A stretch of DNA of 64,000 nt, taken from the sequence record MZ574431.2; one strand, given 5' to 3'. A program made the translations under genes and the position numbers. Position 1 is the first letter of the stretch. Each line of letters opens with the position of its first letter. The notes below the pieces were generated by a model that was given only the letters and a program-made list of their open reading frames with translations, was not told where the DNA came from and made no database searches. This document shows positions 34,085 to 53,960 of this stretch, piece after piece.

Positions 34085-34092
34085 AAATCGCG

Positions 34093-34130
34093 GTGACGTA
34101 ATTCTTGACACGTGTCGTTAACCATGTCAC
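34093..34130 (+). promoter_or_regulatory. late-type promoter upstream of portal
   Basis: GTGACGTAATTCTTGACA-CGTGTCGTTAACCATGTCA; related motifs at 51020, 53935, 57484. Confidence 0.7.
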
Positions 34131-36568: not shown

Positions 36569-36805
36569 ATGACCTTCCATTACGACGCGCTCGACGAGTG
36601 CGTGAACTCGTGCGCGCCGGCTCCGACGATCTCGGTGGTGCGCGGCCTCTTCATCGACGACGGTGACAAGGCCCTGGGCAGCCCGCGCTTTGTCGCCTCC
36701 GAGGCTGGCCGCTTCATCGACATCACCACGCCGGCCTTCGAAGGCGTGCTGCATGAGGACGAGGCCTATCCGCTGCTCAAGCAACTGACGGCGGTGCTCC
36801 TGTGA
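36569..36805 (+). CDS. hypothetical protein
   Basis: GGGA SD, first of a coupled operon. Confidence 0.7.
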   Translation: MTFHYDALDECVNSCAPAPTISVVRGLFIDDGDKALGSPRFVASEAGRFIDITTPAFEGVLHEDEAYPLLKQLTAVLL

Positions 36806-37011
36806 GCCCCTTCATCACCCTGACCCTGGCGGTTGAATACGACGACGTCGAGGTGACGCTGAACGCCATCATGGTCGAGGCCTTCTTCGCCAGCGCCAGC
36901 ATCGCGGGCGTCACCGAGGTCCGCACCACGAGCGGCAAGGGCTACAACGTCCGTGAGACCTACGAGGTCGTCAAGGAGCGCGTGGCCGCCGGCCTGCGCT
37001 GGGAGGCGTAA
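36802..37011 (+). CDS. FlbD/SwrD-like small protein 1
   Basis: ITLT..VTLNAIMVEAF..T.V.T.SGKGYNVRETYEVVKERVAA parallels the SwrD family pattern. Confidence 0.6.
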   Translation: MSPFITLTLAVEYDDVEVTLNAIMVEAFFASASIAGVTEVRTTSGKGYNVRETYEVVKERVAAGLRWEA

Positions 37012-37017
37012 AGCCCC

Positions 37018-37275
37018 ATGTTCGTCAAGCTCACCCACGCCCATGGCAGCGAGGCCACCGAGGACCTCTACGTCAACCCGCTCAACATCATCGCGATCCG
37101 AGCCGACGGCGCCAACGCCCGGCTCTACGCGACCGATGGCGGCCTTTATCCGGTCGCCGAGAGCGCCGGCGACGTGGCCGAGGTCTTCGCCCAGGCGCTC
37201 GACACCAACCGTGAAAGCAACGACGCCATGCAGACGCTGCTGTCGCTGTTCGTCCAGAGGAGCCCCGCGTCGTGA
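37018..37275 (+). CDS. FlbD/SwrD-like small protein 2
   Basis: MFVKLT..G..LYVNPLNIIAI..L..TDGGLYPVAESAGDV. Confidence 0.55.
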   Translation: MFVKLTHAHGSEATEDLYVNPLNIIAIRADGANARLYATDGGLYPVAESAGDVAEVFAQALDTNRESNDAMQTLLSLFVQRSPAS

Positions 37276-37610
37276 TCATCCTGCATCGCAAGCACCCGGT
37301 CGGCGGCGGCCAGTTCACCATCCAGCGCATCGCCATTCGACCGAGCGCCCTGGACTTGATCATCGAGACCGCCCCCGACGCCCCGGCCACCATCGAAGTC
37401 AGCGGCGACCGCTATGACGTCGTCGAGACCTTCGAGCAGATCACCGGCCTGATCGGCTGCTGGAAGCACAGCGACATCCTGATCAGGGGTCACGCCCTGG
37501 CCAAGGGCGAATCGCTCCAGGACTTCCATCTGGCCGGCATCGAGTACGAGCCCGGCGCCGCTGAGAAGCACGAAGAGATGGTTCTGGTCTTGAACCCCTG
37601 GACCGAATGA
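37272..37610 (+). CDS. FlbD/SwrD-like small protein 3
   Basis: IAIRPSALDLIIETAPD..TIEVSGDRYDVVETFEQITGLI. Confidence 0.5.
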   Translation: MIILHRKHPVGGGQFTIQRIAIRPSALDLIIETAPDAPATIEVSGDRYDVVETFEQITGLIGCWKHSDILIRGHALAKGESLQDFHLAGIEYEPGAAEKHEEMVLVLNPWTE

Positions 37611-37882
37611 TCGTCGTTCACTGCCATTTCGCGCCCAACGAGGCGATCTTCCTCCACCCCGAGCGGATCACCAAGTTGCACAAGCCCTCGACCACGCAAC
37701 TGTGGGTCGAAGGCTATGAGTGCTGCCTTCAGATCAAGGAGACCCCCGAACAGGTCGCCAAGCTCTGCGCGGCCTGGGCCGATCGCTGGCGGTGGGAAGA
37801 CTTCAACAACGCAACCGCCAACTACGCCGTCTTCGACAAGGAAGCCGGCGTGGTGGTCTTCAACTTCAGCGAAAGACCCTGA
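37607..37882 (+). CDS. FlbD/SwrD-like small protein 4
   Basis: IFLHPERITKL..STTQLWV..LQIKETPEQVAKL. Confidence 0.5.
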   Translation: MIVVHCHFAPNEAIFLHPERITKLHKPSTTQLWVEGYECCLQIKETPEQVAKLCAAWADRWRWEDFNNATANYAVFDKEAGVVVFNFSERP

Positions 37883-38130
37883 TGAGCAAGCACACCGACA
37901 GCCTCATGGCTGACTGCCAGAAGCTGGTCGCCCTGACCGAGAAGATCACCGAGGCCTCCGACGGCCTGCGCGACCTGATCGTCCAGATTCCGAGGAGCCG
38001 CGAGGGCGCCCTGGCCCTGACCAAGCTCGACGAGTTGGACTACTGGGCCGGCCGCGCCATGCGCGAAATCCTCGAACCGATCCTGGGCGAGCTTCAGGAA
38101 GCCGGCCTCGTCAAGATCACCGAAGCCTAA
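37882..38130 (+). CDS. Acb2/Tad1-like helical hairpin protein
   Basis: PRSREGALALTKLDELDYWAGRAM resembles the SRE.(S/A).A.TK.EEA..W motif of these sponge families. Confidence 0.5.
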   Translation: MSKHTDSLMADCQKLVALTEKITEASDGLRDLIVQIPRSREGALALTKLDELDYWAGRAMREILEPILGELQEAGLVKITEA

Positions 38131-38188
38131 CTGGCCACATTTGGCCAGTTAGCCCCGGTTCTCCCTCACATCTGGCCACATTTGGCCA
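38131..38188. repeat. 2 x CTGGCCACATTTGGCCA
   Basis: 38131-38147 and 38172-38188, intergenic. Confidence 0.9.
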
Positions 38189-38214
38189 CTTAAGCCTAAG
38201 CCAAAGACCACGCT

Positions 38215-40543: not shown

Positions 40544-40744
40544 ATGACCTCTCCGACCCTCTCCCTGACCGTCTCGGGCGCCCGCAGCGCCGGCAAGACC
40601 GTCTTGATCCGCAAGATCGCCCAGTTCCTGCGCGAGCAGGGCTACACCGTCGACACCGAGCGCCTGCCGCGTGGGACCGACTACGCCTTCGACGGCGTCA
40701 AGGCCGACGGCCGCGCCGTCACCCTGTTCGAAGGCGGCCTCTGA
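40544..40744 (+). CDS. 66-aa protein with isolated Walker A motif
   Basis: LTVSGARSAGKTVLIRKIAQFL. Confidence 0.7.
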   Translation: MTSPTLSLTVSGARSAGKTVLIRKIAQFLREQGYTVDTERLPRGTDYAFDGVKADGRAVTLFEGGL

Positions 40745-42070: not shown

Positions 42071-42092
42071 AGCCGCCTTCGGGCGGCTTTTT
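42069..42092 (+). terminator. intrinsic terminator
   Basis: AAAGCCGCC-TTCG-GGCGGCTTTTT. Confidence 0.9.
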
Positions 42093-42093
42093 C

Positions 42094-42162
42094 GTGACGC
42101 GTCCATTTTCTTGGTGCTGTTTTTCTTGACGCATGACGTGATCCATGACACGACATGGTTAA
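42094..42162 (+). promoter_or_regulatory. promoter region
   Basis: GTGACG at 42094, TTCTTGACG at 42123, GACATGGTTAA half-site. Confidence 0.5.
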
Positions 42163-42175
42163 TCACGAGGTTCAC

Positions 42176-42889
42176 ATGAACGCCCTCCTCTCCCAAGACG
42201 AAATCGACGGCCTCTTCGACGACGAACCGGCCGTCTACACCCTCACCGGCGTCACTCACGTGCCGACCCTCAAGCCGGGCGTCTACCAGACCGGCTACGA
42301 GACCACCGCCAACATGAACTACGCCCCCGGCGTCTCCCAGACCGAGATCAGCACCCTGACCGTGCCGGGCATCCACACCACCGCCCGCTATCTGAGCGCC
42401 ACGGTCCCGACCGACGCGCTGCTGCATGGCGTCGGCGACACCATGGTCGGCGCGCCGATCTTCTCGGACGTGTTCGTCATCGACGAGGCGGCGCCGCTGC
42501 TGTCGCGCGATCTGGTCGCCAGCCTGGGCCTGGAAGGCTACTATGGCGACATCGCTCCGCTGCAAGCCCCCGGCCCTGGCCGCGTGATCGATGGCGGCGA
42601 CGTCACCTTCACCGTCAACACCTTCTCCTGGCCCAAGGCCGCGCCCCTGGCCGGCGACCTGGACGATGAGGAGGAATTCTTCCTCGACGAAAGCCCCGAC
42701 GGCTTTAGCTGGTGCCTGATCCCCGACGCCAAGCGCACCGCCTGGAACGCCTTCTGCGCCGGCTTCGAAGCCACTGCCTTCGACGATCCCGATGATCCGC
42801 CGTCGGCGCATCTGCCCGACTGGGTCAAGGTCATTGAAGGCCACCCGCGCTGGACCGTCTTCAAGCGCCCCCGCCAGAAGTTCTCGTAA
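42176..42889 (+). CDS. hypothetical protein with FliM-N-like N-terminus (LLSQDEIDGLF)
   Basis: GAGG SD; first gene after own promoter. Confidence 0.8.
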   Translation: MNALLSQDEIDGLFDDEPAVYTLTGVTHVPTLKPGVYQTGYETTANMNYAPGVSQTEISTLTVPGIHTTARYLSATVPTDALLHGVGDTMVGAPIFSDVFVIDEAAPLLSRDLVASLGLEGYYGDIAPLQAPGPGRVIDGGDVTFTVNTFSWPKAAPLAGDLDDEEEFFLDESPDGFSWCLIPDAKRTAWNAFCAGFEATAFDDPDDPPSAHLPDWVKVIEGHPRWTVFKRPRQKFS

Positions 42890-42911: not shown

Positions 42912-43193
42912 ATGACCACGACCGCCAAGACCGTCGATCAGTTCGCCGCCAACGAGCGTGAAAAGATCGCCGACCAACTCAACCCCTTCGCCCGCGAGCG
43001 CTTCCTGGCCGGAAAGCTGCCGCTGGACGTCATCGAATACCGTGGCGAGGGCGTGCGCTCGATGGAACGCGCCATCGCCGCCAAGCGCCGCAACGGCCAG
43101 AGCGTCACCAAGGACGAACTGGAAGAACTGGCCTTCGTCAAGAAGTGGACGGCCGATCCGATCATCGTCATCCCCACCGATCTGGCGGCCTGA
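42912..43193 (+). CDS. hypothetical protein
   Basis: ATG at 42912 in track ORF. Confidence 0.7.
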   Translation: MTTTAKTVDQFAANEREKIADQLNPFARERFLAGKLPLDVIEYRGEGVRSMERAIAAKRRNGQSVTKDELEELAFVKKWTADPIIVIPTDLAA

Positions 43194-43411
43194 TGATCCC
43201 GTACGATCTTCGCCAGCAGCATGACGAGTGGGGCAACAGCCCCGCCCTGCTGTCGGCCGAGGATCGTGCGGCCCTCGACCTCGGCGCCTGGAAGCGGGCG
43301 GGTCATGAAACCCTCTGCCAGACCTGCGACCGCCCCTACTGGAAACACCCCGAGGTCATCGGCGCCCTGTGGCTCCATCGCCTCTGCGACAACACCCTGG
43401 TGAAGCTATGA
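43193..43411 (+). CDS. small Cys/His protein
   Basis: CQTCDRPYWKHP..HRLC; TGATG coupling. Confidence 0.7.
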   Translation: MIPYDLRQQHDEWGNSPALLSAEDRAALDLGAWKRAGHETLCQTCDRPYWKHPEVIGALWLHRLCDNTLVKL

Positions 43412-43656
43412 GCAAGATCAACGGCCCCTTCTGGGCCATCACCTACAAGACCGAGAGCGGCGACGAGGGCTTCTACGGCGTCTTCAACGAGGAGCCGACC
43501 GACGAGCACTTCATGGCCATCGCCATGGAGGACTTTCCCGACGAGGTGATCGAGGAAGAGAACGACGAGGGCGAGACCATCCGCAGCCTCTACATCTACT
43601 TCCGCGCCCACGAGATCGAGAGCATCGTCGATCTGCCCGAACCGGTGGAGGTCTGA
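43408..43656 (+). CDS. acidic hypothetical protein
   Basis: ATGA overlap. Confidence 0.75.
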   Translation: MSKINGPFWAITYKTESGDEGFYGVFNEEPTDEHFMAIAMEDFPDEVIEEENDEGETIRSLYIYFRAHEIESIVDLPEPVEV

Positions 43657-43658
43657 TC

Positions 43659-43964
43659 ATGGCCCTCATCCAAGCCTCCGAGGCCCTGCGACTGGTGGCC
43701 GGAACCACCGCCGACGAACTGCTCGAAAAGCTGAACGCCGAGATCACCAGCGCCGCCAAGGCCGGCCGCCGCGCGATCACCATCGGCCAGAGCTTGGTCC
43801 GCCAGACCCTGATCGACGATCACGTCAACGGCAAGAGCAAGCCCGGCGATCTGCTGGTGGTGATCGAAAACCGCCTCAACGCCGCCGGCTACACCCTGAC
43901 CAAGAACAAGGGCTACTCCGATCCGCGCGAGTACCAGTCGCCCTACCTGTCCGTGACGTGGTGA
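43659..43964 (+). CDS. hypothetical protein
   Basis: GGAGG SD. Confidence 0.8.
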   Translation: MALIQASEALRLVAGTTADELLEKLNAEITSAAKAGRRAITIGQSLVRQTLIDDHVNGKSKPGDLLVVIENRLNAAGYTLTKNKGYSDPREYQSPYLSVTW

Positions 43965-43969
43965 GCATC

Positions 43970-44236
43970 ATGCCCGAGCAAGCCATCATCTGTCTCGACG
44001 ACGAGGCCCTCGACCAGGAGATCGCCGCCGCCGCCCAGGTGGAGACCTGCCCCTTCTGCTGCTCGACGCGCATCGAGGCGCCGATGGAAGGACACCCGTC
44101 CGGCTACGGCGCGATGATGCAGACCGGTCCGACCGTCTGCTTCGATTGCGAGGCCTACGAGATGTCGCACTGGCGCGACTATCCCGAGGCCACGCCCGAG
44201 GAGAAGCAAAAGGGCTGGATCAGGGGCACGGTCTGA
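43970..44236 (+). CDS. small Zn-ribbon-like protein
   Basis: CPFC...CFDC. Confidence 0.7.
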   Translation: MPEQAIICLDDEALDQEIAAAAQVETCPFCCSTRIEAPMEGHPSGYGAMMQTGPTVCFDCEAYEMSHWRDYPEATPEEKQKGWIRGTV

Positions 44237-44508
44237 TGAGCGCGCCGCTGATGATCGAATACAGCAACGCCCAGACGGGCTTGCGTGGCTTCATCTCGCC
44301 CGAGCATGTCATCCAGGCCTTCTGGAGCAACGGCCGGCGCTACATCGTCCTGGCCCACGACAAGTCGGCCATGGAGATCGACCAAGCCCCTGACGTGATC
44401 GCCGCCCTACGGCGCGTCGCTCTGCGGGGGACGGGCGGGCAGCCTCAAGACTACGCGGTTCGTTGGGACGGCCGCGCTGGAAACATCCGGTTCGTCGGCC
44501 CTCAGTAG
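44236..44508 (+). CDS. hypothetical protein, weak FlbD/SwrD-like pattern
   Basis: FISPEHVIQAF..YIVL..AMEIDQAPDVI; TGATG coupling. Confidence 0.6.
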   Translation: MSAPLMIEYSNAQTGLRGFISPEHVIQAFWSNGRRYIVLAHDKSAMEIDQAPDVIAALRRVALRGTGGQPQDYAVRWDGRAGNIRFVGPQ

Positions 44509-53808: not shown

Positions 53809-53882
53809 TTTATGCTCTTTAGGACATAAATCTGGTTTATGCTCTTTAGGACATAAATCTGGTTTATGCCCTTTCGGGCATA
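53809..53882. repeat. 27-bp tandem hairpin repeat (2 exact plus 1 variant)
   Basis: TTTATGCTCTTTAGGACATAAATCTGG at 53809 and 53836; TTTATGCCCTTTCGGGCATA at 53863. Confidence 0.9.
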
Positions 53883-53934
53883 TCGTGACGCCGATCCTGT
53901 CATGTGACACGCATGCTATCTTAATGCAGCGTTT

Positions 53935-53960
53935 CTTGACATGCGTCGTTAACCATGTCA
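53935..53960 (+). promoter_or_regulatory. late-type promoter
   Basis: CTTGACATGCGTCGTTAACCATGTCA, 24/26 identical to 34104-34129. Confidence 0.75.

Follow-up and report, generated by a model that had tools for sequence, protein, structure and literature searches.

The window analysed here is the left 64 kilobases (kb; positions 1-64000) of the 312-kb genome of Caulobacter phage J4 (MZ574431.2; Bertelyvirus, Dolichocephalovirinae), whose host is C. vibrioides CB15, and the gene under study is gp088 (CcrJ4_gp088), the product of which begins MNALLSQDEIDGLFDDEPAV. At this locus a terminator-like hairpin, a promoter-like element and a ribosome-binding site lie upstream of gp088, and a string of small genes follows it (Table 1); gp088 to gp093 probably form one transcription unit headed by gp088. 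The N-terminus of the protein closely resembles the peptide of the flagellar switch protein FliM to which CheY and Cle proteins dock. From this resemblance we suggest that the gp088 N-terminal peptide may be a functional mimic of the FliM N-terminal peptide (FliM_N), docking host phosphorylated CheY (CheY~P) and/or Cle proteins bound to cyclic di-GMP (c-di-GMP), a reading that we hold tentatively, as quite possible and somewhat short of probable.

Five lineages were compared throughout: the J4 group, CcrSC, CcrBL9, and the proteins P0002 and P0005, encoded at the metagenomic loci L004 and L005. Their five positional orthologs are full-length, and each precedes the same string of small genes: orthologs of gp089-gp092, matching in length and order, trail the gp088 ortholog in CcrBL9, CcrSC, L004 and L005, and gp093 is unmatched. 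In a Megablast comparison of the 41-45 kb stretch, six further isolates are identical to J4 across that stretch, and CcrBL9 and CcrSC share about 83-85% nucleotide identity with it, in a patchy manner. Translation of gp088 from the ATG at 42176 is backed by the GAGG at 5 nucleotides (nt) and by its conservation, the same layout of ribosome-binding site and ATG being common to all five lineages, so that the start does not lie downstream of the motif described below. The next in-frame ATG (M46) has no ribosome-binding site when the sequence is read by eye. An upstream in-frame ATG at 42155 was rejected as the start; a 1-nt insertion in CcrSC breaks its frame, and it too lacks a ribosome-binding site.

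The first-pass annotation of this DNA had claimed a FliM-type CheY-binding motif at the N-terminus of a phage protein, and the motif is there. Within residues 4-14 (LLSQDEIDGLF), the segment LSQDEIDGLF agrees at nine of ten positions with the FliM consensus LSQxEIDxLL quoted in PMC5677366, the final Leu being replaced by Phe. The docking peptide of C. crescentus FliM is ASERILNQDEIDSLLG, residues 47-62 (Nesper et al., PMC5677366). We recovered ILNQDEIDSLLG from more than 120 alphaproteobacterial genomes, several Caulobacter among them; Pfam identifies the Caulobacter protein that carries it as FliM (PF02154 at 248 bits, together with PF01052, FliMN_C), and there the motif is preceded by an acidic, glycine-rich extension of about 50 amino acids. 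When gp088 is compared with Caulobacter FliM by BLASTP, the best alignment is the motif itself (LLSQDEIDGLF against ILNQDEIDSLL, 7/11 identical and 9/11 positive), and the QDEID core is identical in the two proteins. The residues shared are those known to matter for docking. Replacement of FliM I57/D58 abolishes motor reversals, the polar localisation of CleA and CleD, CleA binding in the two-hybrid assay and peptide binding by CleD (PMC5677366), and E. coli FliM D12 forms a key salt bridge to CheY K119; the region of I10, D11 and L13 in gp088 aligns with host FliM I57/D58 and with E. coli FliM D12.

A match of this kind is seldom expected from composition. Given the phage's own amino-acid composition, the relaxed pattern [LIVM][STN]QxEIDxL[LFIMV] is expected about 3e-4 times per proteome of 100,000 residues, and about 2e-5 times if N-terminal positions alone are counted; the first 214 kb of J4 contain it once. 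A sequence search of the PDB with gp088 residues 1-30 gave no match, FliM 16-mers lying under the 20-residue limit of that search.

Judged from sequence, gp088 is not a FliM homolog, and the likeness is confined to the short linear motif, because comparison with FliM profiles aligns the motif only (11-31 columns, probability at most 21%). Pfam searches with E values up to 10 found neither the FliM middle domain (PF02154) nor the FliN-like SpoA domain (PF01052) in gp088 or any of its orthologs, and the FliM control was found at 248 bits. In hhalign comparisons with 31 alphaproteobacterial FliMs, the four motif-bearing sequences together aligned over 31 columns (Prob 21%, E 0.001), whereas P0002 alone or the alignment of seven sequences aligned over the 11-12 motif columns and nothing else. 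The notion that residues 1-35/50 were captured from fliM was rejected on this account, since the longer alignment vanishes with P0002 alone or with seven sequences; nor is there a sign of recent capture, because gp088 and fliM differ in their DNA at synonymous sites. A FliN/SpoA-like segment in the middle of gp088 (VIDEAAPLLSRDL, compared with VLDEQQVPLSRVL of FliM) was likewise rejected, as a BLAST fragment of 8/18 identities with E 2.7 and no Pfam support. What gp088 shares with FliM_N (residues 1-16 in E. coli, 47-62 in C. crescentus) is the LSQxEIDxLL consensus with its QDEID core and the Ile-Asp pair essential for docking of CheY, CleA and CleD, as well as an acidic linker after a near-N-terminal motif (FDDE in gp088, GFDLSGDG..DD in FliM). 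FliM differs in having middle and FliN-like C-terminal domains, both of which gp088 lacks; the host motif sits behind about 50 amino acids, whereas that of gp088 begins at residue 4; and within the motif gp088 has Phe for the last Leu and departs from FliM at the N/S and S/G positions.

The family is small. An exhaustive hidden Markov model search of 1.84 billion representative proteins found six relatives of gp088, a word-indexed search found three, and IMG/VR yielded CcrBL9 and CcrSC only; orthologs are 31-43% identical to J4 gp088, and neither gp088 nor its orthologs gave anything meaningful in Pfam, PHROGs or NCBIfam. The motif is full in two lineages, the J4 group (N-terminus MNALLSQDEIDGLFDD) and P0002 (MNALLTQDEIDGLHDD, with LTQDEIDGLH matching 8/10 of the consensus); only its helical half, QIDALF, is present in two others, CcrSC (MSPDDTKRQIDALFKE, DTKRQIDALF) and CcrBL9 (MSPQTTESQIDALFEE, TTESQIDALF); and P0005 (MTAPEKLPHWITMGSADP) has no motif. 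Conservation among orthologs, on which the proposal had been made to depend, thus extends to I10, D11 and L13, which are invariant in the four motif-bearing lineages of the five, and does not extend to the whole motif. J4 and P0002 agree at 14/16 of their N-terminal positions, compared with 32% identity overall and 1-3 identities per 16 in the next 80 alignment columns; their C-terminal tails are conserved to a similar degree. At conserved residues, codons are identical at 12/13 positions in the N-terminus and at 46/66 (70%) elsewhere; the difference from the 70% baseline is not significant (p ~0.06, our own binomial estimate), and selection at the protein level is therefore sufficient for the N-terminal conservation.

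Structure prediction divides gp088 into three parts. AlphaFold2 modelled the full protein from a 7-sequence alignment with a predicted local distance difference test score (pLDDT) of 49; in this low-confidence model residues 7-14 are predicted to be helical (pLDDT ~50), and the motif stands at the extreme N-terminus, followed by a region of pLDDT below 40. The motif should on this model be accessible, because it forms an extreme N-terminal short helix followed by a low-confidence stretch. The middle region varies in length and sequence among lineages, total proteins measuring 188-243 amino acids. We observed that the segments ALLHG and phi-phi-I-D-E-x-x-P-L-L-S-x-x-L occur in swapped order in J4 gp088 (about residues 70-118; 42380-42530) and in P0002, which points to duplication or rearrangement inside the variable middle, and that J4 gp088 may hold two copies of the latter segment. 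The C-terminal domain is predicted with greater confidence, at pLDDT 70-94 over residues 161-230 in the full model and a mean of 77 when modelled alone. Neither the full nor the C-terminal model had a Foldseek match with E <0.5 in the PDB (two runs) or BFVD. It is plausible that gp088 is a Bertelyvirus-specific accessory protein, composed of an N-terminal mimic motif, a variable and probably flexible middle and an orphan C-terminal domain.

The upstream DNA agrees with the first-pass annotation in placing gp088 first behind its own promoter with a CtrA-like half-site. Read directly from the sequence, the hairpin after gp087 closes the gp073-gp087 gene string; it is kept with compensating changes in CcrBL9/CcrSC (GCCGTCC..GGGCGGC) and is kept in L004, and a consensus terminator scanner missed it, probably as A-T pairs absorb part of the T-run. 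Beyond it a 60-nt element (TTTTTCTTGAC...CATGACAYGACATGGTTAA...GAGG...ATG) is nearly invariant in J4, CcrBL9, CcrSC, L004 and L005. A metagenome scan with the conserved 19-mer of this promoter found 11 loci, all of them chance matches to a CATGACATGACATGG repeat and none (0/11) with gp088. The half-site within the element is of the TTAACCAT type, reportedly a CtrA half-site motif (Laub et al. 2002). The half-site 10-mer occurs six times in the window, compared with about 0.02 expected by our own composition estimate. A scan of the window for the full CtrA box, TTAA-N7-TTAA, found none at gp088 or near 42.1 kb, and five elsewhere (2244, 3298, 3349, 15970 and 19585).

The same kind of site recurs in front of other gene blocks. 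Outside 0-24 kb, GGTTAA[CT] is found only at 34.1 kb (before the portal gene gp072), at 42.15 kb (gp088) and at 53.9 kb (before gp110). A promoter-like layout, GTGACG-N5-TTCTTGAC followed by ATGGTTAA or GTTAACCATGT, is recurrent: the sites at 34087-34127 and 53921-53958, upstream of gp072 and gp110, read TTCTTGAC-N7-GTTAACCATGT, and promoters of GTGACG..TTCTTGACATGGTTAA type lie at J4 positions 73660, 124791 and 150566, before three later gene blocks. This layout probably marks one temporal class of phage promoters, and the gp088-gp093 unit is driven by this recurrent class. CtrA binding has been shown for two CbK promoters (PMC9437464), and control of gp088 by CtrA is plausible from its half-site. 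In the left-end repeat region of the window, about 80 GGTTAAC are present, all at 500-24000 and often about 22 bp apart; CtrA sites cluster in the terminal repeats of CbK-like phages (Mascolo et al., PMC9437464), and the clustering of GGTTAAC and CtrA boxes at the left end of J4 fits that pattern.

Table 1. Features in and around gp088 (positions are those of the window)
Feature	Coordinates	Strand	Remarks
Intrinsic-terminator-like hairpin	42072..42092	+	Stem GCCGCC/GGCGGC, loop TTCG, then TTTTT; directly after gp087 stop
Promoter-like element	42120..42162	+	TTTTTCTTGAC with -35-like TTGAC at 42126-42130, repeated TGAC units, CATGACACGACATGGTTAA
CtrA-type half-site TTAACCATGT	42153..42162	-	Reverse complement of plus-strand ACATGGTTAA; invariant in five lineages
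Ribosome-binding site GAGG	42167..42170	+	5 nt before ATG 42176; kept in five of five lineages
gp088 (CcrJ4_gp088) coding sequence	42176..42889	+	237 amino acids plus stop; annotated as hypothetical protein
FliM-type CheY/Cle-docking motif, residues 4-14 (LLSQDEIDGLF)	42185..42217	+	Matches consensus and host FliM
Variable middle, residues 18-160	42227..42655	+	pLDDT 26-40; islands ALLHG (81-85) and GPGRxIDGG (133-141)
C-terminal domain, residues 161-237	42656..42886	+	About 75 amino acids; strand-strand-helix-helix-strand; ends HPRWTVFKRPRQKFS
gp089-gp093, five small genes	42912..44236	+	Directly 3' of gp088; junctions tight or overlapping

If the motif works as its likeness suggests, gp088 would be made from its own promoter, and its exposed N-terminal helix would bind the alpha4-beta5-alpha5 face of activated host receivers, namely CheY~P and/or c-di-GMP-loaded Cle proteins, by means of the Ile-Asp-x-Leu contacts used by FliM, with the Asp standing in for E. 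coli FliM D12 in the salt bridge to CheY K119. Competition with FliM would then leave the switch complex no longer receiving reversal or brake signals; alternatively, the motif might recruit CheY or Cle to whatever the C-terminal domain does. The expected outcome would be altered swimming or surface attachment of the infected swarmer cell, and the phage might gain through less wasteful adsorption of flagellum-dependent sister phages, or through the CtrA-linked "lytic deferment" ("Trojan-horse") strategy proposed for CtrA-sensing Caulobacter phages. Any partner of the motif would be a host protein, because no CheY-like receiver is detectable in Caulobacter phages by tblastn with E. coli CheY as query; a phage-encoded CheY-like partner was rejected on the same search. 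The biology of these phages fits the proposal, since CbK-like phages reach the cell by head fibres and flagellar rotation and infect swarmer cells only (PMC9266447), and their promoters are CtrA-controlled, the phages appearing to read the cell-cycle state via CtrA (PMC9437464). In its fullest form, the idea makes gp088 the first case of a virus mimicking a flagellar-switch docking peptide: it would pull CheY~P and c-di-GMP-loaded Cle proteins off the motor, or bring them to its C-terminal domain, and so control the direction in which the infected swarmer swims, the braking of its motor and its attachment to surfaces. We consider this form rather unlikely.

The first-pass reading of gp088 as a decoy or recruiter is thus supported in part: the motif is real, N-terminal and near the host FliM peptide, and its I-D-x-L core is kept in four of five lineages, but it is degenerate or absent in three. 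The proposal rests on an 11-residue match with suggestive but incomplete conservation, and several observations weigh against it. CcrBL9 and CcrSC have lost the LSQ part and have Gln in place of the Glu. These two proteins, with 76% identity overall, share QIDALF but disagree at four of the five residues 4-8, which so appear unconstrained, leaving only the helical half under constraint. The syntenic ortholog at L005 (Logan SRR22868754, 8001-8681), from a more distant Bertelyvirus-like phage, retains the gp088 promoter, ribosome-binding site, gene order and C-terminus and has a wholly different N-terminus with no motif; the conserved function of the family is therefore independent of the motif. 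What the family as a whole conserves is the C-terminal domain, present in five of five lineages. The odds computed from composition overstate the surprise, because L-S-x-x-E-I doubles as a generic helix N-cap and hydrophobic-staple pattern. The conservation statistics, drawn from a family of five lineages, are thin, and the conserved N-terminus adjoins a strongly conserved DNA element, which makes a nucleic-acid constraint or a recombination tract possible. Finally, gp088 lies in the structural-gene region (34-115 kb), between the portal and major capsid genes.

The main alternative is that residues 4-14 are an ordinary amphipathic helix (N-cap Ser, Glu at N3, hydrophobic staple), coincidentally like FliM, which serves the folding, oligomerisation or partner binding of gp088; the function would then reside in the C-terminal domain, and gp088 would be one of many accessory or host-takeover proteins of jumbo phages. 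This is a serious contender, if a doubtful one. It accounts well for the persistence of the C-terminal domain in the whole family and for its occurrence as stand-alone proteins of 58-63 amino acids in phage-like contigs, as well as for the loss or decay of the motif in L005 and CcrBL9/CcrSC; moreover, gp088 has no FliM, FliN or other flagellar domain by Pfam, NCBIfam or profile comparison, and its neighbours carry no motility-related annotation. Coincidence fits less well with a match that exceeds the capping pattern (in the Gln, the I-D pair and the Leu at i+2) and reproduces the QDEID of the host, that has no second copy in 214 kb and is, given the composition, very unlikely, and whose conservation between J4 and P0002 is close to that of the C-terminal tail.

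Alternatively, the peptide could dock other receivers, such as DivK, CpdR or the receiver domains of PleD or CtrA, in which case the phage would alter the swarmer-to-stalked transition, ClpXP proteolysis or CtrA activity and not motor direction. Receiver domains commonly present their alpha4-beta5-alpha5 face for docking, and the CtrA-type half-site in the gp088 promoter would allow a feedback loop. We nevertheless regard such targets as improbable: the peptide resembles specifically the FliM motif, which is recognised by CheY and Cle, and we know of no peptide of FliM type that binds DivK or CpdR. Further in their favour is the dependence of these phages on the swarmer state and on promoters controlled by CtrA (PMC9437464).

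More improbable again is that the conservation of the first 16 codons reflects a constraint on nucleic acid or a recombination tract and not selection on the peptide, whether because the leader (initiation region or operator) extends into the open reading frame or because the J4 and L004 lineages recently swapped a module of promoter and 5' end. In all lineages the 60 nt upstream are near-identical though the proteins have diverged so far, codon identity in the first 16 codons is high, and J4 and L004 share identical promoter variants (GCATGACGTGATC), unlike CcrBL9/CcrSC. That codon identity, however, does not significantly exceed a baseline set by strong codon bias; CcrBL9 and CcrSC, which have the same promoter and a different coding 5' end, still encode QIDALF; and promoter and peptide evolve separately, because L005 has kept the promoter and lost the peptide. 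Least probable of all, and very unlikely in our view, is a morphogenesis or virion-associated protein whose N-terminus is a targeting sequence or propeptide (for example, for prohead packaging and then removal by protease): the position between portal and capsid genes, the HslV-family peptidase gp094 1.6 kb downstream and the promoters of the same class before the portal gene and gp110 would suit it, but gp088 shows no likeness to structural or scaffold proteins in PHROGs, the PDB or BFVD, and the portal-capsid block holds some 35 small orphan genes that are not structural-looking.

A wider suggestion, that gp088 and an upstream "SwrD-like array" may form one motility-control system, rests on a weak link. 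Within the putative array, gp075 has a sub-threshold match to the Pfam FlbD/SwrD family (PF06289; 16.2 bits where 24.7 is required, E 0.0079, spanning positions 11-53 of the 59 in the profile), and gp074, gp076, gp077 and gp078 have no FlbD match in Pfam at E up to 10. The array is about 4 kb from gp088, with nine annotated genes (gp079-gp087) and a terminator between them, and belongs to a separate transcription unit; nothing links the two functionally. The adjacent proteins gp075-gp078 (36802-37882; four proteins of 69-112 amino acids) align weakly with one another and, by eye, share a FlbD-like pattern, phi-x-L-T...L-N...I...T-x-G-x-x-Y-x-V-x-E-T-x-E-x-V; from these alignments they look like weak paralogs.

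Several other features of the window were observed. The neighbouring gp079 (37882-38130, 82 amino acids) has a sub-threshold match to the Acb2/Tad1 hairpin domain (PF24729; 20.1 bits with a cutoff of 27, E 7e-4) and may be a sponge for cyclic-nucleotide defence signals (anti-CBASS or anti-Thoeris). The 288-nt gap lying upstream of gp080 holds the direct repeat CTGGCCACATTTGGCCA(G/C)TTA two times (38131-38200, about 40 nt apart). The product of gp083 (40544-40744, 66 amino acids) has a Walker-A-like N-terminus, SGARSAGKT, with weak matches to many P-loop nucleoside triphosphatase families, and is far too short for a complete enzyme of this type. Downstream of the gp088 unit, a 292-nt gap annotated as "intergenic" (44233-44508) contains an open reading frame (MSAPLMIEYSNAQ...FVGPQ) with high GC content at third codon positions, probably an unannotated J4 gene, because CcrBL9 gp107 and CcrSC gp103 are annotated there. 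At 53810-53900, just upstream of the promoter-like element at 53.9 kb, GGTTTATGCTCTTTAGGACATAAATCT is present as two tandem direct copies, after which comes a diverged third (TTTATGCCCTTTCGGGCATATCG); this stretch is part of the long gap that separates the minor capsid gene from gp110.

In literature searches, no FliM mimic or CheY binder encoded by a phage came up. If the proposal is true, gp088 would be the first phage factor acting on the step from chemotaxis to the motor, and a clear case in bacteriophages of short-linear-motif mimicry, which is familiar in eukaryotic viruses and hardly documented in phages; the docking-motif decoy, a familiar strategy, would appear in a new viral setting. 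It would also offer a handle on how flagellum- and pilus-dependent phages manage the behaviour of an infected motile cell, on the linkage between the CtrA-linked regulation of phages and host physiology, and on the selectivity of the FliM docking surface towards the five Cle proteins and numerous CheY paralogs that Caulobacter has, and a 30-residue peptide that titrates CheY/Cle regulators would be a useful laboratory tool. If there is no binding, gp088 is one more orphan jumbo-phage protein.

Among known systems, a comparable architecture is seen in other proteins that bear a FliM-type docking peptide for CheY-P on an unrelated body, such as FliY of Bacillus subtilis, a C-ring component and phosphatase with CheC-like and FliN-like domains. 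As in gp088, the short docking peptide at the N-terminus is attached to a domain of another function, to which it brings CheY-P; it differs in being cellular, whereas gp088 is viral and has an orphan body with no detectable relative of known function. Among phage proteins, PIT4 of Pseudomonas phage LSL4 binds FleS and PilS at their histidine-kinase domains (PMC10714779), and Aqs1, from phage DMS3, inhibits the function of type IV pili (PMC13436744). Both are small accessory proteins proposed or shown to disable the phage's own receptor appendage and discussed as infection-exclusion devices, as gp088 might be; they differ in that neither mimics a flagellar-switch docking peptide or has sequence similarity to gp088. 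CleA and CleD dock to the same FliM peptide in a manner dependent on I57/D58 (PMC5677366) and would be the likely host-side partners of gp088; being receiver-domain proteins, however, they stand on the other side of the interaction, and it is the target of Cle, not Cle itself, that gp088 resembles.

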